Shown piece by piece: positions 3,400-63,064 of a stretch of 64,000 nucleotides of DNA. The notes beneath the pieces are model-generated. The model was given only the letters and a program-made list of their open reading frames with translations, ran no database searches and was not told the origin of the DNA. Made by a program: the position numbers and the translations under genes. Numbering within the stretch: the stretch's first letter is position 1; each line of letters starts with the position of its first letter. The stretch comes from Octopus sinensis (lineage: Eukaryota): NCBI RefSeq assembly GCF_006345805.1, contig NW_021832425.1, positions 1 through 64,000 of the forward strand. The letters are read 5' to 3'.

Positions 3400-4060
3400 T
3401 GAATGGCTAAGAAGACCTTTCCACCTTCCTTAAATAGGTGGTCAAGTGGGCTTGGAATAATATTGTTCAATTTGGAAATTGTCGTCGTTTGAGACTGCGA
3501 ATGGCAGCCCGGACGTCACCCACAGCTAGTTTGACACAAACACGATCATTCAGGGTGTCCTCCTGTGAGGTGTTCTTTTGTTATTGGGGAATGCTTGCGA
3601 TAAACATGGGGCAAGGTTGTTATTGGGTGCGAAGATTCTGTTGATGTTCTCTTTAATCAATTCTGCGAGAGGATGTGGATTTTCCCAGTGCGGATAAGGG
3701 TTCCGTGCGCCAGTGGGGCAAAACTGATTAGACGAGAGCATGCTACCCAACTATTAGACGTGAGACGTTGATGAAGGAAGTAAGACATTTGGAAACTTGT
3801 ATCTTTGCTGACTTTGGATTGCGATTGGAAATTTTCAAAGAACTTCGAAACCAGGACAGTTTGAAGAGGAATGAGTTGACGTCCAATTGACTAGGACTAC
3901 CTTGTTAAAAAATGGGTACTTTGCCATACACAATAAATGCTGAAGACGTCCATGTCTCCTCCTTTTTAACCATTAAACCCATCTGTTCCACACCATAAAA
4001 CACATCCCGTAAGAACATCTTCATGTGAGTGGCAATGTCTGGCAACTCTCTCTGCCTTAC
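3400..4060 (-). pseudogene. Decayed 5' part of a CRE-like element
   Basis: DTLNDRVCVKLAVGDVRAAIR matches DTLxERVNRKLLEGDVRAALR of the 27.7-kb copy. RLISFAP...LAELIKENI also aligns. Possible degenerate PHD finger at about 3930-4050. Confidence 0.55.
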
Positions 4061-4143
4061 TGCTTCTGAGTCACCAGACACCAGTTTTTATGTGACATTC
4101 TCTCTATTCAACGCTGTATTTAGAACCCTCGTGTCGTCATTTA

Positions 4144-4284: not shown

Positions 4285-5734
4285 CAGTGGTGGTGAAAAA
4301 AACCGGTTTTGCAGTCACTAAGTTTTTTTAGCTTATAGCTATTAATTTTCCAAATGAAATAAAGAGTTTGAAGTTGATTATATGTATAATTTTTTCACTT
4401 TTGAAAATTTCAATAATCGGAAAATTTAAAAATTTGAATTTTAGCATGTGAATAAAAAACCGGTTTTAACAAAAAGAGTTAACAAAATCAACAGTTAGTA
4501 TGTTGTGTGGTATCCTCGATTAATAAATAGCTCGTATAACCTTTTAGGCATACTATCAATTAATTTCCAAATATTTTCAGATGGCAATTCGTTCCAAATT
4601 TTTTATTAATTTACTTCGAGATCAAGTTTATTTTTGCAAAATCTAGTGAATAATTTTGCTTCATCATGCTCCAAACATGTTCCATTGGGTTCATGTCTGG
4701 AGATTGCGGAGCCCAATCAAGAATTGGAACTTTATTTTCTTCAAAAAACTTGATTGTCAACGCAGATTGATGACAGGGAGCCAAGTCTTGTTGGAAAGTG
4801 AACTGATTTAGTCCCATTTTTCGCGCCGAAACAAACAAATTATTCGTTATTACATTTATATATTTAGCGGAATTGAGTGCTCCATTAACAAAAACTAAAT
4901 TGCCAACTCCTTGAAAGAAGATACAGCCCCAAACCATAACAATACCTCCACCAAATTTTACTGTCGGTGTTATATGACTCAATTCATAACATGAAATTTT
5001 TTTTCGATAACAGTATTGCCTTTTTTTAGTATGAAAAATCTGAAAAGATGTTTCATCAGAGAAAATAATAGTTTTCCATGCGTCATTGTTCATCCGAATA
5101 AAAATTTTTGACAATTCACATCTTTTTATTATGTTTTTCTTCGAAAGCAACGGTTTACTTTGACATACTCTTCCGAAGAGAAAATTTGAATTTAAATAAG
5201 TTCCAATTGTCTTTCTACAGACACTCTTACCAGTTAAATGTTTTATTTCATTTCTTAACGTGTTAGAAATTTTGTTGGATCGCACTCAATAAGATGTAAT
5301 AGGATTTCAATGTCTGTTTTCTGAAGCTTTTTATGACGTCCGGAATCAGAAATCCTATCAGCAGTTCCATATTTTTTGAATTTTCGAAAAAAATCTCCGA
5401 TTGTCGATTGTAAAGTATTTAGATGTTTTGCGATATCTTTTATCGTCAAATTTAACTCAAAAAGAGCAAGGATCTTTCCTTTAATTATTGCATTTAACAT
5501 TTGCTTATAAAACTTAAAATTCAACAAATAAAATATCATTCAATAAATCAAACCGGTTTTTTATTCACACGCAAAAATTTAAATTTTCAAAATTTTAAAC
5601 GATTAATGAAATTTTTATAAACAAAAAAATTATAAATCTAATAAACTCCAAAAAGTTCAATTCAGTTGGAAAATTGAATGCTATCTGCCAAAAAAACTTA
5701 GTAACTGCAAAACCGGTTTTTTCCTCCAGCACTG
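4285..5734 (-). mobile_element. Tc1 transposon (DD34E), near full length, frameshifted
   Basis: TA TSD and imperfect TIRs of about 190 bp with internal aaaaccggtttt direct repeats (IR/DR type). Motifs FSDET, QQDLAPCH, SPDMNPMEHVW with 34 residues between the second D and E. ORF split across 5539-5255 and 5285-4611. Confidence 0.95.
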
Positions 5735-12001: not shown

Positions 12002-12282
12002 CAAATAGACAAAATTTTCGAATAAAAATACATTTTCTGCGTATTTTTTTTATTTGAAGCATTTTGAATTTTTCTTATTTGAACAAAATAGCAATTCATA
12101 AATTAAAATATTATTTTTAGTTAGGAAATCGATTTTAAAGCACAGACTAGTTGGCATTAATTTTAAATTTTATCATCGCAAATATTGGCATCCAATTCCA
12201 TTTTAAGTATTTGTCATTTTATAATATTTATTTTGACAAAGTCGATTTTGAAATTTAAATTTGATTAATACAAAAATAAAGT

Positions 12283-12860
12283 CAACAAACTAATAAATTC
12301 TCCCAGCGAGACGGAGGGAACAGCTGTTGCCACGCATGACAGCCAGCAGGATCCTCTGAATGAGGAAAGTAAATTCCCTAGGGTCCTTGGACCGCGAAGA
12401 ACAAAGATGTCCCAATTTCTTTAGGGAAGTGAGGGTCCCGGAGCCAAAGACGCCGGAAGTCTCGACAACGATTGGCCAAAACCAAAAGTCATCCATCAAA
12501 GACTGATATTTCCGGCACTTCGAAAGCTCAGCCTTATTAGCACGAGACCCAGCAAGAGAGGCCGATTCGTTGATGAAAGACTTTGAGAAGGTATCCACAC
12601 AAGTGGAATCCCAGACCAAAGGTCTCCCAGAATAAAACGAGAACAACGTAGAGCCGTCCGGCCTTTTCCCGTCACCACGGTCGAGACCCTTAGGCTCAAG
12701 GACAGAAGGGTAGCCGGCCTTTTCGAGTGAGTCGAGAATGATTCTGTTAATCGCCGAATGGCGTGGAATACGACCCGCGCTTTTCTTGCAGGAGAGGGCA
12801 TGGAGCCCGTATACGTCCATAGTAGATCCGCACCGGCAGGGGTGGGGGGAATTGAATTCA
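12283..12860 (-). mobile_element. CRE-like 3' fragment (RLE endonuclease)
   Basis: HALSC..SAGR..RH and RPDG..WDSTC..PIVVETSG motifs; nearly identical to about 62200-62770. Confidence 0.9.
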
Positions 12861-16765: not shown

Positions 16766-17019
16766 TATTTTATAAAATAAGTAAAAAAATGACTCTTAAC
16801 TATAATAACGAGAAACAGAGGGACTTGAAGCGATTAAAAAAACGCATCCAGGAGAGGGTGGCACAAGCGAGATAACTTTACTAACGTTATTTTTCGGTTT
16901 GCTTATTAATAATAACAAAAATGACTATTTATTACATGTCCGGATTTTTTTACTAAAGGTGCAGATAGATTAAATAACCACAGCTTGAACAACGTCGACA
17001 AAAGGTTCTAAATGCCCAG

Positions 17020-17330
17020 GCTTTCGTTCGGTTCTAAAGTCCACTAATCTGGATCTTGCAGACGGCAAGCGTCTGGATGGAATGACGGTCTTTCCATTCA
17101 AAAAAGGAAAGAATCTTGTATTAGGCATAAGCTATACCGACAGATTTGCTCCAAGAGCTTGATTCAATCTGGTTCGTGTTCTGGCTTAAGGGGGGCAGGA
17201 GAAACCAAACGGAAAAGTACGCGTCCATTACTGAAACATAGAACTTTGTCCAGATTGCGGTGAAGATGAGAGGTGTGATTGAGCGGAATAGGAAGAGGAT
17301 TCTGTCTATAATTATATAAAAGATATGAAA
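17020..17330 (+). pseudogene. Degenerate CRE-like RLE fragment
   Basis: LDLADGKRLDGMTVFPFKKGKNLV. Confidence 0.7.
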
Positions 17331-17463
17331 GAAAACGATTGACCATCGAAAATAACCTAGGTGTAGCAGAGAATATCCGAAGCATTTTTGGCAAGTAAAT
17401 GGTTAGTATTGCGGGACAGCCAATGGCGAATTCGAATTTCTATATGTCGAAATGTGGAAAAAA

Positions 17464-18450: not shown

Positions 18451-19454
18451 GCTTTTAAGAGTTAGACAGAAAACAGATATGTTCAAAGCGTCGCGACAAA
18501 AGGAGAATAATCAAAGAATTATCTGGTGATCAAAATAACAATTTTACAAAGAAAAATTTAATGTAATACACAGTAATATCAATTTTTTGTAGAATAAATA
18601 TAAGATGAAAAAATCAACAATTTTTTGTTAAAAATAAAAATAAAAGCTCCATATACCAAATATAATATTAAATAAAAAAATAATAAAAGTAGGACTAGCT
18701 AGCACGATGTTTAATTATTAATGCGGATCAAAACATAACAAAATAAAACCCCAAAACCAAAATTTAATATTTTCAAATTTGGTTACGGAAATTTGATAAA
18801 AATAATTAAATATTGTGCTATCAGATATATTCAAAATACAAATATTAAAAAGTATATGTGAGTTGATTCAAAATAGAATAGAAAATAATAACTAGCCGAT
18901 ATTTTGTTCATTAACCAAAAGTATTCAAATAAATTTATTACAAATACGTTCAGCCATTTAAAAATTATTTTATAAATTTAGAGCTTTTAGTAATAGTTAG
19001 CATTTTATAAAATGAAAAATTTTCTTGCTTTTTAAAATTTTTAATCCTCGATAAAATGTTTATTTGATTGATATATTCTTACACTGAAATTTCACTGTAA
19101 CTAAAAATCTAAGCGAGTTAATTAACTCCAACTTCTCTTAGGAAGCCAGCAGCTATAATGAAACGGGCAGCCAGCCTCAAGAAATCCCGAGGATCTCAGT
19201 CGGAAGATGAAGACGGCGGGTCTGGAAAGAGACAGAGTTAGCTGACGTCATAAACCACAGTTTGAAAGTTTGGAGTTTCATTCTGCTAATATGGCACTAA
19301 TAATTTCATCCCATGGGATGAAAAATTATGAAAAACTTTGACTGCTAGTAGAGATGGTCAAAGGACATGATATGAGACAACTAGTGATAATCCAAAAACT
19401 TACATTTTGCAATTATAGGAATCCAAAACTTAAAAAAGCAAATGCTAATATTTT

Positions 19455-20800
19455 ATACGACGCCTCCATTGGAGGCCCGGCCGATAGTGTTGTAAATGAC
19501 CTAAACAATGTGGCTCCGATACTGGCTTCTATAGGCCTTACCGTGAACCCACAAAAATCAGAGATTTTCAATATTGGATACGACCATGCACTCTTTACTC
19601 TGGAAATCCAGCCCCTGTTCGACCTTCATCTCCCAGCCATACGCACCGTTCTGCCCGAAGAACTTACTCTTCTCGGTACGCCTCTATTCTCGTCCGGAAT
19701 CCCATCTTTCCTCCGCGCTAAACTTCTTAATATGGAAAAATCATTCGACACTCTTAAATCCATCGACGCCCATGTGGCTTTCTTTCTACTGAAGAACTTT
19801 CTTGCCTTTCCTCGTTTGGAGTACGCACTTCGCACTTCTCCCTGTTTCCGATTCCCGGATGCAGTCGGAGAATTCGATTCGCTGCTCAGGAATACTCTCG
19901 TTCAAATCTCAAACGTACATTTTGACGAAATGGGCTGGAAACAGGCTATCCTGCCTATCAGGCACGGGGGTCTCGATTCCAAGCCCCCTCTGTCCTCTCC
20001 TTGCCATGCTTTCTTTCTTCCTCTCACCGATGCATGCCTCTCGTAGTCCAGATCCTTCCTCCTCCCTCTGGATCGCTCACGGACTCAGAGCTTTCATACG
20101 GCACATTGTTGTGGACAGATTGCGGTCTAAATACTCCCGTTGACCTATGCCTTATCCGCGAGTGGACGGAGATCAGCAGCTCTCAGTCTTTCCGGTACTT
20201 ACTGTCTCACGGAGACCAACACCGGCGTGCTTGTCTGTTGTCTGGAGCATCTCCAAAATGCTAACTATTACTACACCCGCTCTCCTGCCGCAAATGCCCT
20301 GGGAGGTTCCCCAGGCACGGACAACTTAATTCCATAATAAAGCGTCTGCTCGAGGCAACCGGCATCCCGTGCCAGCTGGAGCCCTCTGGCCTTAACAGGG
20401 GCGATGGCAAGAGGCTGGACGGCGTCTCGCTCTTCCCGTTCAAGTGCGGCAAAGCGATCGTCTGGGACGCGACATGCTCTGACACTTTTGCGTCAACATG
20501 CCTTCTCGCGTCCGCGATCGAAGCTGGCACAGCGGCGAGGAGGGCAGAGACCCGGAAGATAGACAAGTACGCCTCGCTCGCCGACAGATTCCTCTTTGTG
20601 CCTGTTTCAGTCGAAACATCAGGCACATTCGGCCCAGCCACGCTACGTTTTCTCACCGAGAGAGGCCGTCACCTCGGGAGGATCAGAAACGACCCTCGCG
20701 AGGTCAATCGGCTTTTTGAGCGCGTCTCAATAGCCGTACTCAGGGGGAACAGTTTCTCTATTCTCTCTGCGGCTAGTAGCTGACTTCCTTTTATTAAATA
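19455..20800 (+). mobile_element. 5'-truncated CRE-like element
   Basis: YDASIGG, FPRLEYALR, RPDGVSLFPF, WDATC and RVSIAVLRGN motifs across frameshifts. Confidence 0.9.
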
Positions 20801-24404: not shown

Positions 24405-24600
24405 GCATTGCTTTTGGGCAATTGCCATCGAGACTTCCTGTGTTTTTGGGGCCAATACGCTTGCTCATCTTAAAAAGCTTGGCCGTCTGTGGACCTATCG
24501 CTCCAGAGATCCCAGGAAATTTATATTCCTTATTCAGAGGATCTCGCTGGCTGTTTTACGCAAGAATTGTCTTTCAATCCTGCAAGTCAGTACTTAATAG
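24405..24600 (+). pseudogene. CRE-like 3' fragment, same subfamily as 12283-12860
   Basis: FWAIAIETSCVFG...RDPRKFIFLIQRISLAVLR. Confidence 0.75.
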
Positions 24601-26009: not shown

Positions 26010-27690
26010 AAATAATCTGTTGAAAGCAAGTCAGAAAAAGTCTGAGCTAACCTTTTCACAACTAACAAAAGACTGGGGAATTTGTCGATAAATGTGACCA
26101 TGGAAGGGAAATCAATTCCTCCAAATAAAACTTAAAGATACTAGGGATCACTTTTGAGACCTTTCTAAGCTTTACTCCCCATACGGAAAACGTGTTGACG
26201 AAATGCAATAAGAAACTAAACTTTCTAAAGCATTACTTGGAAACTTGGAAGACGCCAAAGGAACTGACGGATTAGAGTCTCTATACCAGGGGTCCGTAAG
26301 CTTTTTGGGTTTGCGGCCGCATAGCATTTTTTTCCTTCTCTTCTACGGCCGCACATTTTCTGCATTATTTTTCGATATTATATAGTAATTTTTTTTAAAT
26401 TAAAAAGTGACCCATAAGTTGCCCTCAAATTAATTGTATCTTCAAATTTTTTAATTTGTGAACAAAGTGCTTGTTGGTGAATAATACAATGTGTACATTG
26501 TACACCAATAACTGATTTATTGTTATACTCTTCTAAGACATATTCAGTTAGGCGTGTAACAAATCCTTGTTTTCTACTCAACATTGCTGGTGCGCCATCT
26601 GTGCATATTCCTCTTAGACATGTCATGTCCAATTTGAATTCCAAACAACATTGTTTAACTATTTCAAATATATCTTGACCCCGTACATTTCCAGGTAGTG
26701 ACTCCATGGATAGAAAATCCTCATGTATTTCAAAATCGAAGGATAGAGTACGAATAAATATGATCAGCTGAGCAGAATCACATATATAATTTGACTCATC
26801 AATGGCAAGTGAAATAAAATAAGTAGTTTGAGAATTTGATTTTTGTAGGAGTGATAGATTAAGATGCTCGGCAATATGAAACTGTCGGCGCTGAATTGTG
26901 TCACGTGAAAGTGGAATTGCTTCAAAGTTATGCTCCTTGTCTGGATCAATCCATTTAACTGATTCCATGATACATCTTTTCACAAGTTCGCCGTCTGAAA
27001 AAGGTTTTCCAGCAGATTCAAGGATATGAGCAACTCGAAAGGATGCTTCAACTCTTGCATTTGCCACATTTAAAAAAGTTTTTAAACATTTTTTTGTTGT
27101 CTTAATTTGTATTTCAAATTTTCGACGGAATCTTCTCTTGAACATTTGGACTTGACAACTAGGTGGTCTAAATGTCTTTGAAAATGTTGTTTAGCATTGT
27201 CCGGTTTATAGTTTTCACAATCTCATGGCACAATAAGCATTGCATACTGAGCATTATATTTAAGATTAGTTACTCGATGACCTAATTGTGCCCACGGCCG
27301 CACATTCATCGACTCACGGCCGCACTTGCGCACCCCTGCTCTATACACTCAATATATTAAACCGACAATTGGTTACGGATGTACAGTATGGGGAAGCAAA
27401 TGTCAAAAAAATCGACAATATTCAAATGGAGATTGTAAACCTCCTAGCGAATGTCACGGGGAACAAAATTCAACCAAAGGGACTAGAAGAAATTGTGAAA
27501 GAAAACAGTGAAGACCTCAGGAAAAAAGTCCATGTTCGGGATCCCCGACCTCTTAGAGTCTAAGACTTAGACAATGCACTCTAGAACACAGAGAAAAGAT
27601 GCAAAGGTATCTGAAAGAGGCTGGGATCATCTGAAATAGTTAATTATGGTTATGACGGTGTTATTGGTCCTAATAAATAAATAAAATATA
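26010..27690 (+). mobile_element. L2/Jockey/I-group LINE 3' region, interrupted by a hAT
   Basis: KILGITF..FLSFTPH..KCNKKLNFLK, then LYTQYIKPTIGYGCTVWG after the hAT; ends in an AATA-rich tail. Confidence 0.7.
26287..27338 (-). mobile_element. hAT (GTF2IRD2/SPIN-like) internally deleted transposon
   Basis: TIR caggggt(c/g)cg(t/c)aag, 8-bp TSD ctctatac (26279-26286 / 27339-27346). Motifs SLAIDES, ICTDGAPAM, HCIIHQQAL. Confidence 0.93.
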
Positions 27691-27754
27691 ACTCCACCCT
27701 AATAGTCTTGTTTATTAATTTACGGGTTAAAAAGATTCGAAAATACAACGATAA

Positions 27755-30700
27755 TTATCTCCTACAAGTTCCTCGTGCGGTTGTGGCAATGCACGCAAGT
27801 ACGGGCTCTTCTGCTCGATTTGCGGGAACTTTTTCCACCTCGGATGTGTAAGGATGTCCCGGCAGGCTGCATCCTCACTCAGTTTATGGAACTGCAATGT
27901 ATGTATGGGCTTTGGCCGGAAGACCCAGGCGAAAATATCGAATGAACCTGTCGTCTCTAGCGAGCCGTTGGATTTCGACAATACGGATTCTCTCCTGCTT
28001 TTCTTGTCTGAGCAAAGGAAGGCCAACAAGATTCCACTTAAGATCCCGAGACCCGTCCGGATCCCTGCAGCTATATGCCTGGCTTCCGCTATTGACGATG
28101 CACTCACGTCCAACGACCAAGAGGCCTGGCTCAAACTCTTCGGTTTCGCCCCGCTTGCACTTGGCATACCTTACACTGAGTCAAAGGAGCCACATCGGAA
28201 CACTAGAGAAAGTTCCATGCATGGAAACTCACTTTCCTCAAAAATGAAGAAAAATATCCACGATTTCCAATCACGATCTATTAACAAAACGAAATTTTCA
28301 AAAGCAAAACATCCGGACGCCGATCATACGCTCTTTCGGAATTGCCCAGATACACTCTGAGAGAGAGTAAATCGTAAACTTCTTGAAGGCGACGTCCGGG
28401 CGGCGCTGCGGGTCGTTTCCAGCGACGATACCGTCCTGGCTCCAACACCTGAAGTCCTCGAGCAGATCAGACGAAAACATCCATGTCCGCCGGAAGATTA
28501 CCGCCCATTCGTGCTCCCGGGAGATATGCCAAGGACAACTGTTACTGAAGGCGAAGTGCGGCGCAGCATTTCGTCGTTCGCGGCGAGCAGCAGTGGAGGT
28601 CTCGATGGCTTGCGACCAGGCTACATCAAGGATCTCACGGCTGGGGCTACTGCGGAGGCGGGCCGCAACCTTGTCAAAATCACAAGATGGTTATGCGTAT
28701 TTTGAACGGGGATATCCCTCCTCTCGCAAGGGAGCTTCTTTTCAGCGCACATCTACTTGGCTTCAAAAAACCCGAAGGTGGGGCCCGCCCTATCGCGGTC
28801 GGGAACTACTTCAGAAGGCTAACAGCTAAAATTGCATGCAGTCTTGTCTGTCCGAGAATATCTGAAGAATTTCCCCCTTCCAACTCGGAGTTGGGGTAAA
28901 GAACGGATGTGAGGCGGCGGCGGTGCATGCCGCAAGGTGCTTTTTCACACAGAAAAACGAACAAAATCCAAAAATGGGAGTCAAGCTTGACATCCGCAAT
29001 GCCTTTAATTCACTGCGGAGGGATCAAATTTTCGAGACTGTAAGCAAACGAGCCCCGGAACTCATTCCACTCGTCTACCTGGCCTACGGAACCAAGTCTT
29101 CACTCGTCTTTGCGGACAAGATTATCTATTCGGAGACTGGAGTCCAGCAAGGGGACCCGCTTGGTCCACTTCTCTTTGCGTTGGCAATTGACGAAACTGT
29201 ACGTTTCATCAGCGCGGAACTGAACCTCTGGTATCTTGATGATGCCACGATTGGAGGGCCGTGGGGAAAAGTTTTTGACGTTCTGTCACAAGCCGTGCCT
29301 GTACTACGAAAACTCGGACTTGATATAAATATAAAGAAATCGGAGCTGATAAATATCACATACTCGGAAAGTGATTTTATCAACGTGGTCAAGTCTTTCG
29401 AATCGATATTACCTGGGATTACTGTCTTACCTCGGGAGAGGGCATACTTTCTTGGGTGCCCACTTGGCGAAAAGGAACTGCGGTGCCATCTGCTGGAAAA
29501 AAACAAGGGTCTTTCTAGAGTTACGGAGAAACTCTCCTTACTCAATGCTCATACTGCATTCTTCCTTTTGAAAAATAGCATTGGCTTGCCTAAACTCCAA
29601 TACGCTCTCCGTTGTTCTCCCTGCTTGGAACATCGAGACATTCTACAGACACTGGATAGGACTTTGAGAAGTTCAGCTGAATCGCTCTTGAACATCCACT
29701 TTGACGAACCTGGTTGGAATCAATGCAAGCTTCCTACACGCATCGGAGGAACGGGTCTCAGGTCGGCGCTGGATTTCGCATTCCCGGCATATCTGTCATC
29801 GCTTTCAAGCTGCAGTCATCTCGTCCAGGAAATCCTACGTAACACTACTGGACTCTCCTTGGACACAGTATTTGACAAGGCTTGCTTGCAATGGAAGGAA
29901 GCCGGACTTTCAATCCCAGATGATGTCTCGAGACAGAATTGTTGGGACGCAATATCATGCAAGGCTGTCGTTGATGACCTGAAGCGGGAGTTGAACCAAC
30001 ACCGGCTCGTCTGTTTGCTATCCGGGGCACAGCACGGGAGTGGTGCGTGGCTCCACGCATTTCCATGCAGTTCATTCGGTACGCTTATGGACGACGATTG
30101 TGTGAGAATCGGTGTTGCACAACGCTTGGGTCTTGACGTCTGTCAGGAACACAGATGCCGGTGTGGAGGAATAGTCGATTCCAAAGGACTACACCCTTTG
30201 TCTTGCAAGAGGAGTGCAGGTCGCGCTCCCCGCCATGCCGCACTCAACGACATAATACGACGGGCCCTCGAGAGCGCAGGATTTCCAGCACACCTGGAAC
30301 CCGTCGGGCTTGACCGGGGAGATGGCAGAAGGCCCGATGGGATAACTCTTTTCCCGTACTCCCAGGGAAAATCACTCGCATGGGATGCGACGTGCGTAGA
30401 CACGTTCTCCCAGTCCACGATTCTTCGGAATATTCATTCGCCCGGTTGGGCTGCTAATGCAGCAGAAAAGGCGAAGATATCTAAGTATTTGGAGATCGGA
30501 AAACTTTTCCGTTTTGTCCCAATCTCGATAGAGACGTCTGGTGTAGTGGGATCCAAAACCGCGGAATTTCTCAAGGAAATTGGGGCGATGCTGGCTAAAC
30601 GAAGGAGGGACAGTCGCGAGGGGTATTGGCTTCGCCAACGTATCGGAATTGCAGTTCTTCGTGGCAACACGCACGCGATACTGGCTGCCGGAGCGTGACG

Positions 30701-30760
30701 ATTTATAATACTTTTCAGTGACATTTTGTAATCTTTTAATCTCTTTATTAAAAAAAAAAG
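27755..30760 (+). mobile_element. Near full-length CRE-like non-LTR retrotransposon: PHD finger - RT - RLE
   Basis: PHD-like CGC..CSIC..FHLGC..WNCNVC at 27776-27904. RT motifs GVQQGDPLGP and WYLDD, C-terminal CxC..HPLSC and RPDG..WDATC, A-tail. One TGA (28358) and two frameshifts (about 28685 and 28875); the 591-aa 3' ORF is open. Confidence 0.92.
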
Positions 30761-42193: not shown

Positions 42194-42914
42194 CATTTCC
42201 TTATTAATATGAATCCATAACTTTCCTTTAATAGAACTTGACTCGAATAATTTCAACTGGTTCCCCATATGGGGATTCGAATCTGTTTAGCTTAAATTAA
42301 AAATTTGTCAATAATCTTTTAAAACTTGAACAATCAAACTTATGTCATTCCAAATTGAAAATCGTATTTTTATTGATGAATATTCATTTTTTCATTTATC
42401 CGTTTATAATAAGACGAATTTAAATTCGGTGAATAAAAACTCAATACAAAATTATTATGATTTAAGTTTTCTAGGATACTTTATACAACATTTACTAAAA
42501 CTTCAAAATATTTTCTACACCGAAATCCTCAGATGATAATAAATGAAAATCATCCGAACTCTCACTTTCTTTAAAATTAAAAAAAACTTAAAAAAGTTAT
42601 ATTTATGAAGAACGGTGTTTATGCGAGAAACTCATTTCAGTTTACTTTCATTATCCATGAAAATAACAAGTTTGTGCTTTTCAAATCTTTCGTCTTTGAG
42701 TCATAAGCCTACATCAAAACAATTAATTTGGGGGATTTTTTCGTTAATTTATGTCGCAGTCCAGAGCTGCGGTACGCCAAGGCTGTGGGATTTTGAAAAT
42801 ATTAATAAATTTTAATAAAAATCACATTTCTGAACTTCTTTAGTTGATCTTTTCAGTAATTATCTAAAAATTTAACTTTTTCTTTATTTATTAATTGTTT
42901 ATACTTGATTTTGC

Positions 42915-43015
42915 ATGTTCCACGTGTCTTGCCGCCGAACCGAGCTCAGCAACTGCTGAAATCAGATTATGACCTGAGAATGTGTCGGTGCATGTCGCGT
43001 CCCAGAAATCGTAAT
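42915..43015 (-). pseudogene. Tiny CRE-like RLE fragment
   Basis: WDATCTDTFS. Confidence 0.6.
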
Positions 43016-46011: not shown

Positions 46012-46194
46012 AAAATTAGATGTCAACGTAGATAACGTTAACAATATTGAAATTTAAAATGTTATTCAATTAACTTGTAGATATACTTTTTTAATTTAGT
46101 TATTGATATTAATATTTAAAAGATAATTTCTTATGTGTATGATTGAAATGATAAAAATATAAAATAAAGACTCGGAATATTAATTCCCCAGGTT

Positions 46195-46445
46195 GGCCTG
46201 CTGTGCAGAGAAAAGGCAAAAATATCTAAGTATTTAAAGATCAGACAATTTTTCCGTTTTGTCCCAATTTCGATAGAGACGTTGGCCTAGTGTGGTCCAA
46301 AACTAAGGAATTTCTCAAGGAAATTGAGGCGATGCTAGATAAACGAAGAAGGGACAGTCGCGAGGGGTATCGGCTTCGTCGACGTATTGGAAATGAAGTT
46401 TCTCGTGGCGACACACATGCGATACTGGCTGCCATGCGTGACAAT
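46195..46445 (+). pseudogene. CRE-like 3' fragment, same family as 27755-30760
   Basis: Nucleotide similarity to about 30445-30700. Confidence 0.85.
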
Positions 46446-47104
46446 TTATATTTTTTATTTCAAATAATTGTTTTGGTTTTAAAACGCCGACTCTTCAGTC
46501 GATAAAAATATTTTTTCCTAAGAATGGTTTGCTGTTTTTTCATTTTTGTTTCAAAATTTGATAATGAGGAACAAATTATTTTTCATTTTTTCTGATTTTG
46601 AATATCTGAAATTATTTAGTAAAAAAACGCTGTATTTTATTAATAAAAATTAATATGGAAGTGAGCCACGCGGATTATCATAGCTTTTGAAAAAAACTTT
46701 TATTCCTATTCATTGAGGGAACAGTCAAGCAATCCACTTTTTCTATCAAAAATATATTTAATCAGAAGAAATCGAATAATAGTTGTCAAGTTAATTTTAA
46801 ACTATATTCAGAAGTAATGTTATATTTTTTTGAATTTAATTTATTTGTCAGCTCATACTTTTAATTTGACAAAATTTATTTGTAATCAATGATGTCTAAT
46901 GGCCATTCTAATTAAGTATACAAAAAAATTTAAAAACTAAAAAAAAATTAGTTTTATAATTTGCTAGTTTTAATCTGTATAACTAATTAGAAAAGGCTGT
47001 ATTCTGGGAATGTGCGTAAAACGTAGGTCAATAAACATTTTGAAATAAAAAATGAATATATACTGTTTAAATTTTTTTTCAAAAATTAATCATTCAACCA
47101 ACGA

Positions 47105-49140
47105 TGATAATTAATTATTCTTTTAGCCGAGGGGAGGGCCAGCGGCTTGACTAATCGACAAACTGTTCCCCCTGAAAACGGCGATAGAGAACCGGTGGAA
47201 AAGCCAGTCTACCTCCCGAGGATCGTGAGTGCGCATGAAGATTTTGGCCCCGACTTTGCGGAGGAAGTTTTCCGTCTTCGGACAAAGAGCACCCGTCGTC
47301 TCCACCGCAATCGGCAGCACGAAAAACTTAACTGAAGAGCTGGAGTATTATGTAAGTTTTTTATCTTCGGCTTTCTTAGCTGCGGATTTAGCCTCCAGAG
47401 CACACGAAGTTAGGTGTGAGGCCGAGAATGTGTCCCAGCAGGTTACAAAGGGTCATTCCGTCAGGGCGTTTTCAGTCACCGCGGTCAAGATCTGGTGGTT
47501 CGAGGACTGAAGTAAATCCCGCCGAGTCAAGAGCCCTCCGTATGACGTCATTCATAGTTGACTGCCTCGGAAATCGTCCGGCACTCCTCCTGCACGAGAA
47601 AGGATGCAGACCGAAAAAGTCAACGGAGCAGCCACAACGACACACATGCAGGGCACATTGCCTTAGCCCAAGGCGCATGGAGATTCCAATGTTTACCGAT
47701 TCGTCATCGAGGAGGCTGCCAGATGAGGCGTTCGGGAATGCGCAAAGCTAAGATCCACCAGCTGAGGATGCTGCTGAAAGTAGGCAAGCGCGGCGATGTT
47801 GGTTTGACGATTCGAATAGCGGTTTGAAAGTTTGCTTGCATTCTATTAGATCCCAGGCTCGCTGAGACATTTGATCCTCCGAAAGGTCAAGGCCTTGTTC
47901 CCTCCAGGCTTCGTTGAAGTAAGCCACATTTGTGTCAAAGGAAAATTCAGAAAAGAATCGTAGAATTCAGAGAAGGACAAAAAAAAGCAGAGAAAAATAA
48001 ATTGCAGAAAAATAAATTTCATGAAAGGAATAATGCTGAGTGTGAGTCCAATTGTCCGATACGTTGGAAAAAAGATTTCTTATTGCGTGAGGCTGCATCA
48101 ATGGAATCGCCAGCCACCGGGGCTCCGAGGATAAAAAGTTGGTTAATGGGAGTAGATTGCGCTCCCGGGATGAGATCACGAAAAGAGCAGACAGCGTCTT
48201 TGAAGGTAGATTGCGAACACCCAAAGTTAGAGATTTCGCATTTAGAGAAATTCAAACTGAGTCCAACTTTCTCCAGGGCCGGAACAATTTTTATTATGTT
48301 TTGCAGAACGATGTCCGGAGGGCCTCCGAGAGTGGCGTCATCGAGGTACCAGAGATTAAGTGGGAAGATACAAGTTTGGTCACCTCAGAAATTCTAAGAC
48401 ACAAAAGGAGAAGCACCAAAGGATCTCCCTGTTGAACTCCCGTAGCAGATGGGATAGTGTCGGATCCGAAGATAAGGGAGGATGGTTGCCCGTATGATTG
48501 GAAAGTTAGGTCAAATAATGAAGGACAATACTTAGAGAAAGCCTCCAAAATCGGTCCCTTCAAATACTGTTGAATGCATTTCTGATATCTAGTTTGATCA
48601 ATATGTTTGGAGGTGGGTATTTCTTACATGCATCTGAGAATGTGCGGATAGCATGAACTGCAGATTCGCATCCTCCAGGGACGCCGAGTTGGCCTGGGCT
48701 AAGCCTTGCAGCGATGGAGGGGATATTTTTCTTGCATGCGATCTTGACTGCAAGCTGAAGGAAGACAAAGCCAACCGCAATTTGACGGATCCATCCGGAT
48801 TTTTTTGCAAAGGGCGATGAGATTGGCTGAGAAGAGTATGTGACGAATAGCATCCGGCAGATTTCCTTGATGAGTTGATTTATTAGGAAAGTAATTGATT
48901 TGAGCAGACGTGTACCGGGCTCACTCACGGTGTGAGAAATTAGGTCCTTCAGATTTCCAGGGGCGGAGTCCATCGGCCCCTCCGCTGCTGCACTGGGCGA
49001 AAGAGTGGATCCCGATAGAAACATATTCATCCGAAAAAGATAAGTGCGGTTGTTTGGCCGGGTGGGGACAAACGCGTAGGTCCGAAGGTGGGGGTGGATG
49101 TTTTTCAAGTAAAGCTTCGAAAACTGATCGGGAAAAGTAT
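47105..49140 (-). mobile_element. 5'-truncated CRE-like element (another subfamily)
   Basis: KLDIRNAFNSI, GVQQGDP, HPFSCRRSAGR and PIAVETTG motifs with frameshifts. Confidence 0.9.
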
Positions 49141-49149
49141 GCGACGTTC

Positions 49150-49472
49150 ATAGATTTTAAAAGAACTATTCAAATATTTATCGAAAAAATAAAGTTATAT
49201 AAATATAACTTGGAAAAAAGAAATTATTATAACATTCCAGAATTTAAACCAATCATTTTGTCATATACATTTAATGATGAAGATATTAAAAACTTTTGCA
49301 ACAGTTATTCAGTATAGAAAAAGATTGATTCTCCGATTCCAAGATATTACTGAGATTATATTACTTAGTATTGTCTGTTGTATATAAAATTTTTTAAAAG
49401 GGTCGATTAAATATAAAGGGGGTCAAAAAAATCAAGGGGTCTACGAGTAAAAAAAGGTTGAGAACCCCTTCT
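49150..49472 (+). mobile_element. hAT right-end remnant
   Basis: ggttgagaacccct TIR-like end and a short transposase-like remnant. Confidence 0.5.
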
Positions 49473-57029: not shown

Positions 57030-58070
57030 AGAGAACTCCATCCTTCAATATTAAGATGGTATGGTAGACAAATCCACTTTGCTAGCTTCAAAATATGTCA
57101 CAAAATATTGCCGGGATTGGAACGGGTCAGGACTCAAAATCCCCGAAGACACAACGAAACAAAGGAACTGGGATAACATTGTCTGCTCCAAAATTTCAGA
57201 AGGGCTTAAAAAAGAAGCAAATCAACATCGCCTTGCTTGCCTGGTGTCAGCCTCAAGTGGAGGGAGCGGAGCATGGCTTGGTGCAATCCCTTGCCCAAAT
57301 CTCGGGACTTTTTTGGACGACGATTCTTTGAGGATTGGAATCGGACAAAGACTTGGACTAGACGTTTGCCAGGAGCACCGATGCCGCTGCGGGGAAACGG
57401 TCGATGCGAAGGGATTGCACCCGCTATCCTGCAGGAGATCCGCCGGAAGAGGACCACGTCACGCCGCTCTGAACGACGTGATCGTCAGAGCTCTGAAGGC
57501 TGCAGGCTTCCCAGCACAGCTTGAACCAGTGGGTCTCGATCGAGGTGATGGAAAGAGACCTGACGGGATGACTCTTTTCCCTTTCAACTCCGGACGATCT
57601 TTGGTCTGGGACGCAACTTGCGTCGATACTTACTCAAGCACGAATCTCCTTAAATCGGTTCAGACACCTGGAGCAGCTGCCTCAATCGCGGAAAACCTTA
57701 AAACCAAAAAATTCCTTCCTCGGGGACCGCTACAGATTCACCCCTGTTGCGGCTGAGTCATCAGGAGCTGTTGGCCCAGCGACTGCCGAGTTCTTGCGCG
57801 AACTCGGAAAGAATGCTCGCCACAAAGAAAAATGATCCTCGTGAAGGAGTATGGCTAAGACAAAGGATCGGAATAGCCATACTCCGAGGGAAACTCGTTC
57901 CATACAGGCAGCGGGCTTCTCAATTGATTTCTCAAATCAATCTCTTCTCTGAATTTATTATAGGCCACGCGATACTTATGGGCAGCCGTTACATTAACCT
58001 TGAACTAAGATTAACTTTAATTATTTTCATTTTATATTTGAAAACTCTTCTTTTGTACATAAAAAAAGTA
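57030..58070 (+). mobile_element. 5'-truncated CRE-like element
   Basis: 231-aa ORF with HPLSCRRSAGR, RPDGMTLFPF and WDATC. Confidence 0.9.
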
Positions 58071-58389
58071 ATCCGAAACTAAACTTCATGAACGGGAAGC
58101 TGACGCGGTCGAGAAAGAATTAGAGCGTACTATCGCGAGGGATATCCGCTCGAAAAACCATCTTGATTCGCGGACGTCACCTGTGAGAGCAGACATGCGG
58201 GACCCGATCTCCTGAACAAAGCCACAAAGAATAAAATTTAGTTATTTTTTAGTCTAGTCGTACTACAGTCGATAATTCTCCTTTCGATTTTTTTATCTAT
58301 TAAATTAAAATATTTAAAATTACCTTGACACGATTATTCGATAAAATATTAATTATTTCTGCAGCAGAATAATACGGAGACTCAAACTT

Positions 58390-61805: not shown

Positions 61806-62790
61806 TTCCTTTGGTGGGCTTGGGCTCCGCTCGGCTCTCGACATTTCTCTTACCGCTTTCCTTTCATCGTCTTCAGGATTGTATCTCTTGTCCATAAGAT
61901 TCTTGAAAAATCGCCGGATCTCGTTTGGACTCTGATATTAATTCTGCACTTTTGCTTTGGAAGAAAAAGGGCTTGAGTTCCCTTCTGATAGGTCCCTCCA
62001 ACGTGAATGGGATAAAATTCTCAGTAAGCATCATGCGGACTCGTTGGAGGCTCTCCTGAACCAGCACAGACTGGCTTGTTACCGTGCACCAGCCAACCGC
62101 ATTCTGGCTCTTGGCTTAACTGCTTCCTTCGACCCATTTGGACACTGTCTTGACTCCGACGCCCCCGTTTTGGCATTTGCCTCCGCCTCGACTTCCGATC
62201 TGTAGTCCTCACCCCTGCCGGTGCGGATCTACTATGGACGTATACGGGCTCCATGCCCTCTCCTGCAAGAAAAGCGCGGGTCGTATTCCACGCCATTCGG
62301 CGATTAACAGAATCATTCTCGACTCACTCGAAAAGGCCGGCTACCCTTCTGTCCTTGAGCCTAAGGGTCTCGACCGTGGTGACGGGAAAAGGCCGGACGG
62401 CTCTACGTTGTTCTCGTTTTATTCTGGGAGACCTTTGGTCGGGATTCCACTTGTGTGATACCTTCTCAAAGTCTTTCATCAACGAATCGGCCTCTCTTGC
62501 TGGGTCTCGTGCTAATAAGGCTGAGCTTTCGAAGTGCCGGAAATATCAGTCTTTGATGGATGACTTTTGGTTTTGGCCAATCGTTGTCGAGACTTCCGGC
62601 GTCTTTGGCTCCGGGACCCTCACTCCCTAAAGAAATTGGGACATCTTTGTTCTTCGCGGTCCAAGGACCCTAGGGAATTTACTTTCCTCATTCAGAGGAT
62701 CCTGCTGGCTGTCATGCGTGGCAACAGCTGTTCCTCCGTCTCGCTGGGAGAATTTATTAGTTTGTTGACTTTACTTAGTAATTAATAATT
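61806..62790 (+). mobile_element. 5'-truncated CRE-like element inserted in Helitron 2
   Basis: GGLGLRSALD through LLAVMRGNS; about 13 bp of target lost, no TSD. Confidence 0.9.
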
Positions 62791-63064
62791 CAAATATAAC
62801 TTTGATAGTTGAAACCACATTAGCACAATCATTAACACAATTTACCACCAATTGACAGCGCAATCAGAAGAATTTGCGTATAAAAATATTATTAACTATT
62901 TACTTGAGTTTTTCGTAAAGATAGAATTATTTTCGGTATGCCTCTTTTCCTAAACTTTTTATTATTCAAAATAATTTTTTAAATAGATAACCGAAGGAGG
63001 AAAAACGAAGCTGAAGAAAAAACGGTCAGCTTAATAAGGTAATTAATTAATCTTTTGTGTGTCG

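Follow-up and report, generated by a model that had tools for sequence, protein, structure and literature searches.

The long interspersed nuclear elements (LINEs) that carry a restriction-like endonuclease (RLE), such as R2, CRE, NeSL and R4, are known mainly as site-specific elements, which choose their targets via N-terminal C2H2 zinc fingers and Myb domains, and work is under way to turn them into tools for inserting genes. PHD fingers have reportedly been described, by Kapitonov and Jurka in 2003, in LINEs of the CR1/L2/Jockey group. The element considered here combines the two features. It lies at positions 27755–30760 of a 64,000-nucleotide stretch of Octopus sinensis DNA (contig NW_021832425.1 of assembly GCF_006345805.1, positions 1 to 64,000; hereafter the window), and it is a decayed, CRE-like element whose protein begins with a PHD finger. 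Intact relatives indicate that this finger was inherited as part of the element and not picked up by the octopus copy alone.

In the CRE clade, insertion is directed to spliced-leader genes or to telomere repeats (PMC3636483, PMC4640811). In the CR1/L2/Jockey group, the PHD is found in ORF1 or, in a few cases, at the 5′ end of the only open reading frame (ORF), and a general role in genome targeting has been proposed for it (Metcalfe and Casane 2014, PMC4120745). PHD domains also occur in Chlamys Penelope-like elements, in Rehavkus DNA transposons and in several transposons of Chlamydomonas (PMC8557442, PMC9977147). For LINEs, no functional work on the PHD finger has been reported (PMC4120745).

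The PHD finger and its fusion to the element

The in-frame translation of 27755–30760 opens with LSPTSSSCGCGNARKYGLFCSICGNFFHLGCVRMSRQAASSLSLWNCNVCM and contains SSCGCGNARKYGLFCSICGNFFHLGCVRMSRQAASSLSLWNCNVCM, which has the form C-G-C-x9-C-x2-C-x4-H-x2-C-x12-W-x-C-x2-C and lies at 27776–27904 on the forward strand. A preliminary description of the locus took this for a PHD finger of the C4HC3 type. A C4HC3 regular expression matched the six frames of the whole window only once, at this site, and it matched none of 300 shuffled sequences in which local composition was preserved; a chance match was rejected on this ground. The Pfam check that had been suggested gave a match of PF00628 (PHD) over profile positions 4–47 of 47, with E=1.6e-4 and 22.1 bits, which is just short of the gathering score of 24. 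(Among the relatives described below, P0023 and P0029 score above that value, at 30.3 and 26.8 bits, and P0007 and P0004 below it, at 19.8 and 13.7 bits.) A finger profile built from 20 relatives has the PHD site as its sole match in the window, with an independent E-value of 8.8e-14 and 40.1 bits.

The predicted fold agrees with the pattern. An AlphaFold2 model of the 57-residue window segment, made with the relatives as alignment, has a mean predicted local distance difference test score (pLDDT) of 87.2. A Foldseek comparison with the PDB places it closest to the Alfin-like PHD fingers AL3 and AL1, with a template modelling (TM) score of 0.80 and a root-mean-square deviation (rmsd) of 1.1–1.3 Å, followed by PHF8, BPTF, KDM7A, Pygo and PHF2. 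Overall, the TM scores to the Alfin-like, PHF8 and BPTF PHD fingers are 0.75–0.80, with rmsd values of 1.1–2.3 Å. Among solved structures, the finger profile matches PHF8 best (3.5e-10), and then PHF2, BPTF, Alfin-like and TAF3. Judged by translation, regular expression, Pfam, family profile and modelled fold together, the segment is a genuine PHD-type zinc finger, as first proposed.

The ligands need to be reassigned, though the pattern itself is present. Alignment with the relatives makes the Cys at 27776 ligand 2 of the family, and "C-G-C" consists of ligand 2 and a loop Cys. The true ligand 1 is now a Ser (AGT, 27767–27769), a single substitution away from TGT, and the other seven of the eight ligands are kept. 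Across 21 sequences, seven of the eight ligand columns show no variation, and the column of ligand 1 is conserved to at least 90%, in fingers that share only 18–39% identity with that of the window.

Does the finger belong to the element? A search with the reverse transcriptase (RT)-endonuclease ORF of the window (28923–30698) returned 764 relatives at E<=1e-10. Many of these are 960–1030 residues long, and several have precomputed matches to both PF00628 and PF00078. (With the N-terminal 316 residues of the window copy as query, only two relatives were found, both truncated gene models without the finger.) The preliminary description had considered that the PHD segment might be absent from other full-length copies; this proved wrong, as 20 of the 65 relatives of at least 850 residues have a full C4HC3 motif, 6–67 residues after the Met. 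In all 20, a single ORF runs in the order Met, short leader, PHD, RT, CCHC and restriction-like endonuclease. Several further long relatives start within the C4HC3 motif, being truncated gene calls.

The intact relative P0004 (968 residues) is colinear with the window from within the finger to the C-terminus of the nuclease. In a tblastn comparison, its residues 19–297 correspond to 27788–28672, residues 304–367 to 28687–28878, and residues 365–965 to 28869–30689, and the family profile matches the window over profile positions 17–980 of 984. The contigs that encode P0004 and P0007 (L001 and L002) contain a single ORF with the Met 9–18 residues before the finger, 490–1000 nt of upstream sequence, and a 3′ untranslated region (UTR) of 60–130 nt with a short run of A at its end. 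An exact search of public assemblies with the window ORF had no match; one Octopus sinensis locus, where a relative with 57% identity lies, is 5′-truncated and rearranged and lacks the finger. Because intact relatives are colinear with the window copy and carry the finger in a single ORF, the fusion is inherited, and these relatives bear out the proposal that the element protein has the PHD finger as a built-in N-terminal part.

Two other origins were tried and rejected: a PHD on a separate ORF1, since the relatives have one ORF, and a host exon captured in the window copy alone, since the fusion is conserved among the relatives. It is true that the window has only one copy with the segment, that this copy has no ATG and that a stop stands just upstream, as would be expected of a chance neighbour or of a captured exon peculiar to one copy. 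Such an origin is hardly credible, however, when the same fusion is present in dozens of intact relatives, on independent contigs and in different organisms, with colinear alignment and conserved ligands.

The window copy itself is a dead fossil, having no ATG, a lost ligand 1, one in-frame TGA and two frameshifts. A TAA at 27752–27754 stands four codons before the Ser at ligand 1, and no in-frame ATG follows it, as the preliminary description had noted for the interval up to the finger. The same description held that the finger is in frame with the ORF apart from one TGA. This is correct for the N-terminal region across that TGA, but the two frameshifts intervene before the ORF at 28923–30698, and the finger is therefore out of frame with it. 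The element is set off by its GC content, which is 0.51 as against 0.30–0.35 in the flanks, and its 5′ boundary falls somewhere within 27564–27766. The only candidate for a target-site duplication is a 7-nt A-rich repeat, AAAAAGA, at 27729 and 30755, the presumed element ends, and it is no better than chance. The catalytic parts are recognisable: Pfam RVT_1 matches the 591-residue ORF at E=1.5e-12, and in an alignment of 54 relatives three endonuclease columns never vary (D848, D864 and K894, numbered as in P0004) and two others, P847 and E891, hardly do. No second full-length copy of the family was found in the window by blastn, tblastn or the family profile.

Clade, fold and variable N-terminal fingers

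In fold, the protein most resembles R2. The full-length model of P0004 (pLDDT 91.2, predicted TM score 0.85) has its best structural matches among R2 proteins (R2Tg and R2Bm; 9nl3, 8gh6 and 9dou) over 880–990 columns, with E from 4e-23 to 1.5e-18, followed by LINE-1 ORF2p and group II intron RTs. The model shows the R2-type body plan, in which binding modules at the N-terminus are followed by the RT, a linker, the zinc knuckle and the RLE, and the family sequence profile matches R2 proteins in the PDB at 1e-21.

The RT sequence, on the other hand, groups away from R2. The references were SLACS, CRE1, CRE2, five R2 elements and BLAG1, with a group II intron as outgroup, taken from the supplementary alignment of PMC7650587. 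In a neighbour-joining tree (318 columns, 200 bootstraps; HERO, NeSL, R4 and Ambal left out), the window copy and 17 relatives are monophyletic with 98% support, and their clade joins SLACS, CRE1 and CRE2 (a group that itself has 100% support) at 98%, against R2 plus BLAG. The pairwise RT scores of the window copy are 69 bits with SLACS and 73 bits with CRE2, versus 25–56 bits with the R2 elements. A barnacle relative carries the name "SLACS", given to it by the submitter. The last block of the RT alignment (PMC7650587) has a (K/R)xWLxL ending common to R2, Utopia and HERO; the CRE elements and the window family are without it and end instead in ...ILGQ, ...IANI or ...LLNI. A mollusc-wide survey found CRE-type LINEs almost exclusively in cephalopods (PMC10294476), and this bias fits the relatives found in Octopus sinensis and in cuttlefish.

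In the tree with the references available, the element would be CRE-like and sister to the trypanosomatid CRE elements; the evidence reaches no further. The label given to it at the outset can stand insofar as the RT groups with SLACS, CRE1 and CRE2 and the element has a single ORF with an RLE, but it comes out only as a sister, lacks the C2H2 finger and, in the window, shows no site specificity. The CRE order of a single ORF with RT, then CCHC, then a PD-(D/E)XK endonuclease is found in the ORFs of L001 and L002 and in the motifs of the window. In place of one or more N-terminal C2H2 fingers there is a PHD, although C2H2 fingers do occur in some members of the clade. Insertion in spliced-leader genes or telomere repeats was not seen at nine 3′ junctions in the window, which is a small sample.

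The grouping with CRE could be an artefact of absent reference clades, the element belonging instead to HERO or to another endonuclease-type clade. The tree contains no HERO, NeSL or R4 sequences, cephalopods also have HERO-type LINEs (PMC10294476), and HERO includes many families that are not site-specific (PMC4640811). Set against this are the 98% bootstrap for the grouping with SLACS, CRE1 and CRE2 to the exclusion of R2 plus BLAG, and the missing (K/R)xWLxL ending, which HERO shares with R2 and Utopia. Membership in HERO or a similar clade is a possibility of low probability.

How widespread is the family, and how constant is its finger? An exhaustive profile search of 1.84 billion representative proteins yielded 8,414 clusters (at 50% identity) with E<=1e-30. 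A census of N-termini by regular expressions, covering the 72 long proteins in the top 150, found 10 with a strict PHD, 9 with a C2H2 finger and 5 with a CxxC...HxHG finger; 42 were left unclassified by these simple patterns, and 6 had almost no N-terminal extension. A C2H2 finger occupies the PHD position in P0085, P0087, P0100, P0101, P0107 and P0113, and a CxxC...HxHG...C finger does so in P0083, P0096, P0102, P0105, P0108, P0120 and P0121. Both types directly precede the same conserved IPKxAR helical domain. Because PHD, C2H2 or CxxC...HxHG fingers are found at the same position, the N-terminal finger can be viewed as an exchangeable cassette. In the RT tree, the PHD bearers are spread over all three subgroups, and two C2H2 bearers are nested among them (with low internal support). 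The element belongs to a very large, mostly animal clade, in which the finger would be one of several interchangeable N-terminal modules. Pfam gives no match for the CxxC...HxHG finger, which may represent a type that has not been described.

The PHD-bearing clusters come mostly from marine-metagenome contigs. One of them has nine full-length members of 972 residues, five of these on separate contigs of about 3.5 kb, and such a cluster suggests a recently active family. Another PHD cluster, with a more canonical finger, comes from the psyllid Diaphorina citri, where the annotation is hypothetical. The Diaphorina citri protein (P0140) and two others, P0143 and P0161, have a PHD of a different, more canonical type (e.g., MIQCDGCDFWYHFSC) on the same protein body plan, and this difference suggests that the superfamily acquired a PHD finger more than once.

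Possible roles of the finger

What might a PHD finger do in such a protein? The element would be copied by target-primed reverse transcription (TPRT), in which a nick made by the endonuclease in the target DNA is extended by the RT, with the element RNA as template. The N-terminal finger would take the place of the C2H2 (and Myb) modules that keep the R2 or CRE protein on its target. The best guess is that the PHD version would bind DNA, RNA or the acidic nucleosome surface in a largely sequence-independent manner, and that this would lead to dispersed insertions.

Several observations bear on this scheme. The 21 fingers have a net charge of +2 to +9, with 0–3 Asp or Glu each, and share a nearly invariant N-x-R-K loop; the aligned stretches of PHF8 and PHF2 are acidic and rich in Asp and Glu. 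In the P0004 model, the PHD (residues 10–58) is joined to the helical domain via a low-confidence linker (residues 61–70, pLDDT 39), and the finger is predicted to behave like a flexibly tethered binding module. At the nine 3′ junctions that related copies form in the window, AT-richness is the only common feature, and other transposon remains surround them. Unrelated junctions of this kind fit dispersed insertion, unlike that of the characterised CRE elements.

The preliminary description saw in the PHD a histone reader, by which insertion would be steered according to chromatin state and not DNA sequence; the H3K4 methylation state is one mark that such a finger might read. The window insertions do appear dispersed, a general chromatin-targeting role has been proposed for LINE PHD domains (PMC4120745), and the top matches of the finger in both sequence and structure are PHDs that bind H3K4me2/3 (PHF8, PHF2, BPTF, Alfin-like, TAF3 and Pygo). 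However, the methyl-lysine cage of PHF8 and BPTF is not conserved at any of the aligned positions, namely the one preceding the first Cys, the loop position opposite the PHF8 Tyr and the one two places ahead of the His. At this third position, only 6 of the 21 fingers have an aromatic residue, among them those of the window and of three of its closest relatives. The Trp that is conserved ahead of the last Cys pair corresponds to a structural position and not to one of the cage. Moreover, acidic readers are what normally binds the basic H3 tail, and these fingers are basic: a conserved aromatic cage with an acidic peptide surface, the mark of an H3K4me3 reader, is not found in them. The histone-reader proposal is thus weakened, and it seems unlikely, if still worth serious consideration, although the fold remains closest to the H3K4me2/3 readers.

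It is also conceivable that the finger plays no part in target choice and serves instead in ribonucleoprotein assembly, RNA binding, nuclear import or contact with a host protein. In R2, the N-terminal fingers contact the target DNA. The PHD finger sits exactly where relatives have their C2H2 fingers, and the flexible tether before the helical domain fits a module that reaches out to bind. These points make a role unconnected with the target quite doubtful, even if the basic charge would suit RNA binding, an analogous role is possible for the PHD in CR1/L2 ORF1, and the domain recurs in unrelated transposons (PMC8557442, PMC4120745).

The joint explanation that accounts best for these results is that the PHD is an inherited finger in a clade sister to CRE, and that it is an exchangeable, basic module that engages the target but does not read H3K4 methylation. 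Its probability may be put at roughly 60%. There are several points that weigh against it. The window copy itself is broken. The tree is a neighbour-joining tree only, without HERO, NeSL, R4 or Ambal references, and the RT references it does include were machine-read (by optical character recognition), with some errors likely. With nine junctions, all in one window, a loose target preference can hardly be argued against. The nearest solved relatives of the finger, by sequence and by fold, are H3K4me2/3 readers, and the octopus-like subgroup keeps the aromatic residue two before the His. Finally, there is no binding experiment for any LINE PHD finger (PMC4120745).

A more far-reaching version can be imagined, in which an animal clade sister to CRE has a swappable targeting finger and the PHD form tethers TPRT to nucleosomes or to a chromatin state in place of a DNA sequence. 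This is speculative and probably too bold. If true, it would make the family the first LINE of the endonuclease type to be guided by chromatin, and it would offer a natural model for retargeting R2-like insertion tools.

The rest of the window and comparison with known systems

The features of the element and of the other fragments in the window are collected in Table 1. Two ORFs upstream of the element, at 26378–27145 (−; 255 residues) and 27288–27563 (+; 91 residues), have no Pfam match at E<=0.01. Inspected by eye, they look like a piece of a hAT-like transposase and the C-terminal end of the RT from another LINE, and they delimit the region that contains the 5′ end of the element.

Table 1. 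Positions of the element, its parts and other fragments in the 64-kb window
Feature	Position	Strand	Evidence or remarks
Decayed near-full-length single-ORF RT-RLE (CRE-like) retrotransposon without long terminal repeats	27755–30759	+	Colinearity with P0004, family profile, GC
PHD-type (C4HC3) zinc finger	27767–27904	+	Regular expression, Pfam, family profile, AlphaFold2, Foldseek; consensus ligand 1 mutated to Ser
Linker and conserved helical N-terminal domain	27905–28594	+	Motifs IPLKIPRPVRIPAA (28031–28072), GDVRAALR (28388–28411), KHPCPP (28475–28492); conserved in alignments of relatives
In-frame TGA inside N-terminal domain	28358–28360	+	Translation
Reverse transcriptase core	28595–29560	+	GGLDGLRPGY (28595–28624), ARPIAVGNYFRRL (28783–28821), KLDIRNAFNS (28983–29012), GVQQGDPLGPLLF (29139–29177), YLDD (29232–29243)
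Frameshift 1, frame of 27755 to frame of 28687	28673–28703	+	tblastn and profile matches switch frame; first-frame stop at 28703–28705
Frameshift 2, frame of 28687 to frame of ORF 28923–30698	28865–28899	+	tblastn and profile matches
CCHC zinc knuckle CRCGGIVDSKGLHPLSC, before endonuclease	30156–30206	+	Cys/His columns invariant in 54 relatives
Restriction-like (PD-(D/E)XK) endonuclease	30207–30695	+	RRPDG (30327–30341), WDATC (30381–30395), AEKAKISKY (30462–30488)
Stop codon (30696–30698), short 3′ UTR and A10 tail (30750–30759)	30696–30759	+	
5′-truncated 3′ fragment, same family	46172–46450	+	blastn, 85% nucleotide identity to 30425–30707
ORF with WTSSAF, 58 residues	3905–4081	−	Mononegavirales RNA-dependent RNA polymerase, Pfam PF00946, E 3e-7 to 5e-7, above gathering score
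Decayed post-PHD N-terminal fragment of related element	3488–3877	−	Family profile positions 86–218; IPKxAR and GDVRAAIR motifs
Further RT-endonuclease fragments, part 1	285–419, 12314–12853 (−), 17010–17352, 19447–20777, 24406–24591		
Further RT-endonuclease fragments, part 2	42903–43007 (−), 47144–49154 (−), 57094–57893, 58089–58220 (−), 61807–62743		

A second decayed copy, with a degenerate PHD at about 3930–4050, had been proposed in the preliminary description. A fragment of a related element does exist next to this place, on the reverse strand at 3488–3877, but the proposed finger is something else. The family PHD profile has no match at 3930–4050, and the degenerate PHD was rejected in favour of a rhabdovirus-like L-polymerase fragment, on the strength of Pfam and the PDB: the 58-residue ORF aligns with residues 739–798 of a rhabdovirus L polymerase (6ueb, E=8e-5). 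A word-based search for homologues of this ORF found nothing, and no further L-like sequence was found on either side of it. It looks like a short endogenous viral fragment. As for the related element, there is no PHD upstream of its fragment and no continuation into the RT downstream.

The L-polymerase-like ORF is directly upstream of the element fragment, with which it shares strand and frame, and roughly at the position of the finger. The two together (3488–4081) could be a template-switch chimera that arose in retrotransposition, or their arrangement could be a coincidence. A remnant of a Tc1/mariner-type transposase starts about 500 nt upstream of the viral fragment; it occupies approximately 4600–5099 on the reverse strand and was recognised by eye from WKTIIFSDETSF, GGGIVMVWGC, FQQDLAPCH and LDWAPQSPDMNPMEHVW.

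At least 10 further RT-endonuclease fragments of the same superfamily are scattered over the window, all of them 5′-truncated or decayed and none with a finger. The longest, at 47144–49154, extends back only to profile position 220. Another family of this superfamily is represented at 12120–12360 (−) and 62690–62920 (+) by near-identical 3′ ends, GGAGAATTTATTAGTTTGTTGACTTTA, with unrelated flanks and opposite orientation; the pair is useful for defining the 3′ terminus of that family.

The window copy is an ordinary dead repeat, and its value is in the architecture of the family, which can be seen in public protein data. A search of the full-text literature, with Repbase and Dfam outside it, found no CRE- or R2-type LINE described as having a PHD; the transposon papers it returned were on CR1/L2 ORF1 or on unrelated transposons. 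The PHD-CRE layout is provisionally regarded as undescribed, though it is common in animal and marine-metagenome data; it is so only provisionally because those two databases were not covered and because the fusion can be seen in precomputed Pfam annotations. The finding shows that PHD fingers in LINEs are not limited to elements with an apurinic-type endonuclease (CR1/L2 ORF1) but extend to the older endonuclease type, and it points to a concrete domain that can be tested for targeting. A clade in which the N-terminal module varies is, moreover, a natural experiment on the evolution of target choice in the R2/CRE body plan.

How does the family compare with what is already known? With the CRE clade (CRE1, CRE2, SLACS and CZAR, and the relatives Cnl1 and MoTeR) it shares the single ORF, the RT, the CCHC knuckle and the PD-(D/E)XK endonuclease, and CRE is its closest RT among the references available (as sister, with 98% bootstrap). 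It differs in having a PHD where CRE elements have C2H2 fingers, in being found in animals, whereas CRE elements are found in trypanosomatids or fungi, in falling outside the trypanosomatid crown group, and in that no insertion into spliced-leader genes or telomere repeats was seen at the nine junctions. With R2 (R2Bm and R2Tg, known from the TPRT complexes 8gh6, 9nl3 and 9dou) it shares its architecture, its fold over some 900 residues, an RT profile match and, presumably, TPRT. R2, however, has N-terminal C2H2 and Myb domains and inserts into 28S rDNA, whereas the window family begins with a PHD or other finger, shows dispersed insertions, and has an RT that groups elsewhere.

HERO and BLAG resemble the family in that an R2-type protein makes dispersed, non-site-specific insertions in animals. 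BLAG, which is known for recombinational exchange in the number of its N-terminal zinc fingers (PMC7650587), differs in having fingers of the C2H2 type and in grouping with R2 in the neighbour-joining tree. The H3K4me2/3 readers (PHF8, PHF2, BPTF, Alfin-like and TAF3) have the same HxxCVG(L/I) core and the same aromatic residue before the last Cys pair as the transposon fingers, but the latter are strongly basic and have the N-x-R-K loop, and their cage positions are not conserved. The CR1/L2/Jockey LINEs, finally, also use the PHD as an accessory N-terminal module. In those elements, however, the endonuclease is of the apurinic type and the PHD is mostly carried on a separate ORF1, whereas in the window family the PHD is fused to the RT and RLE in one protein.

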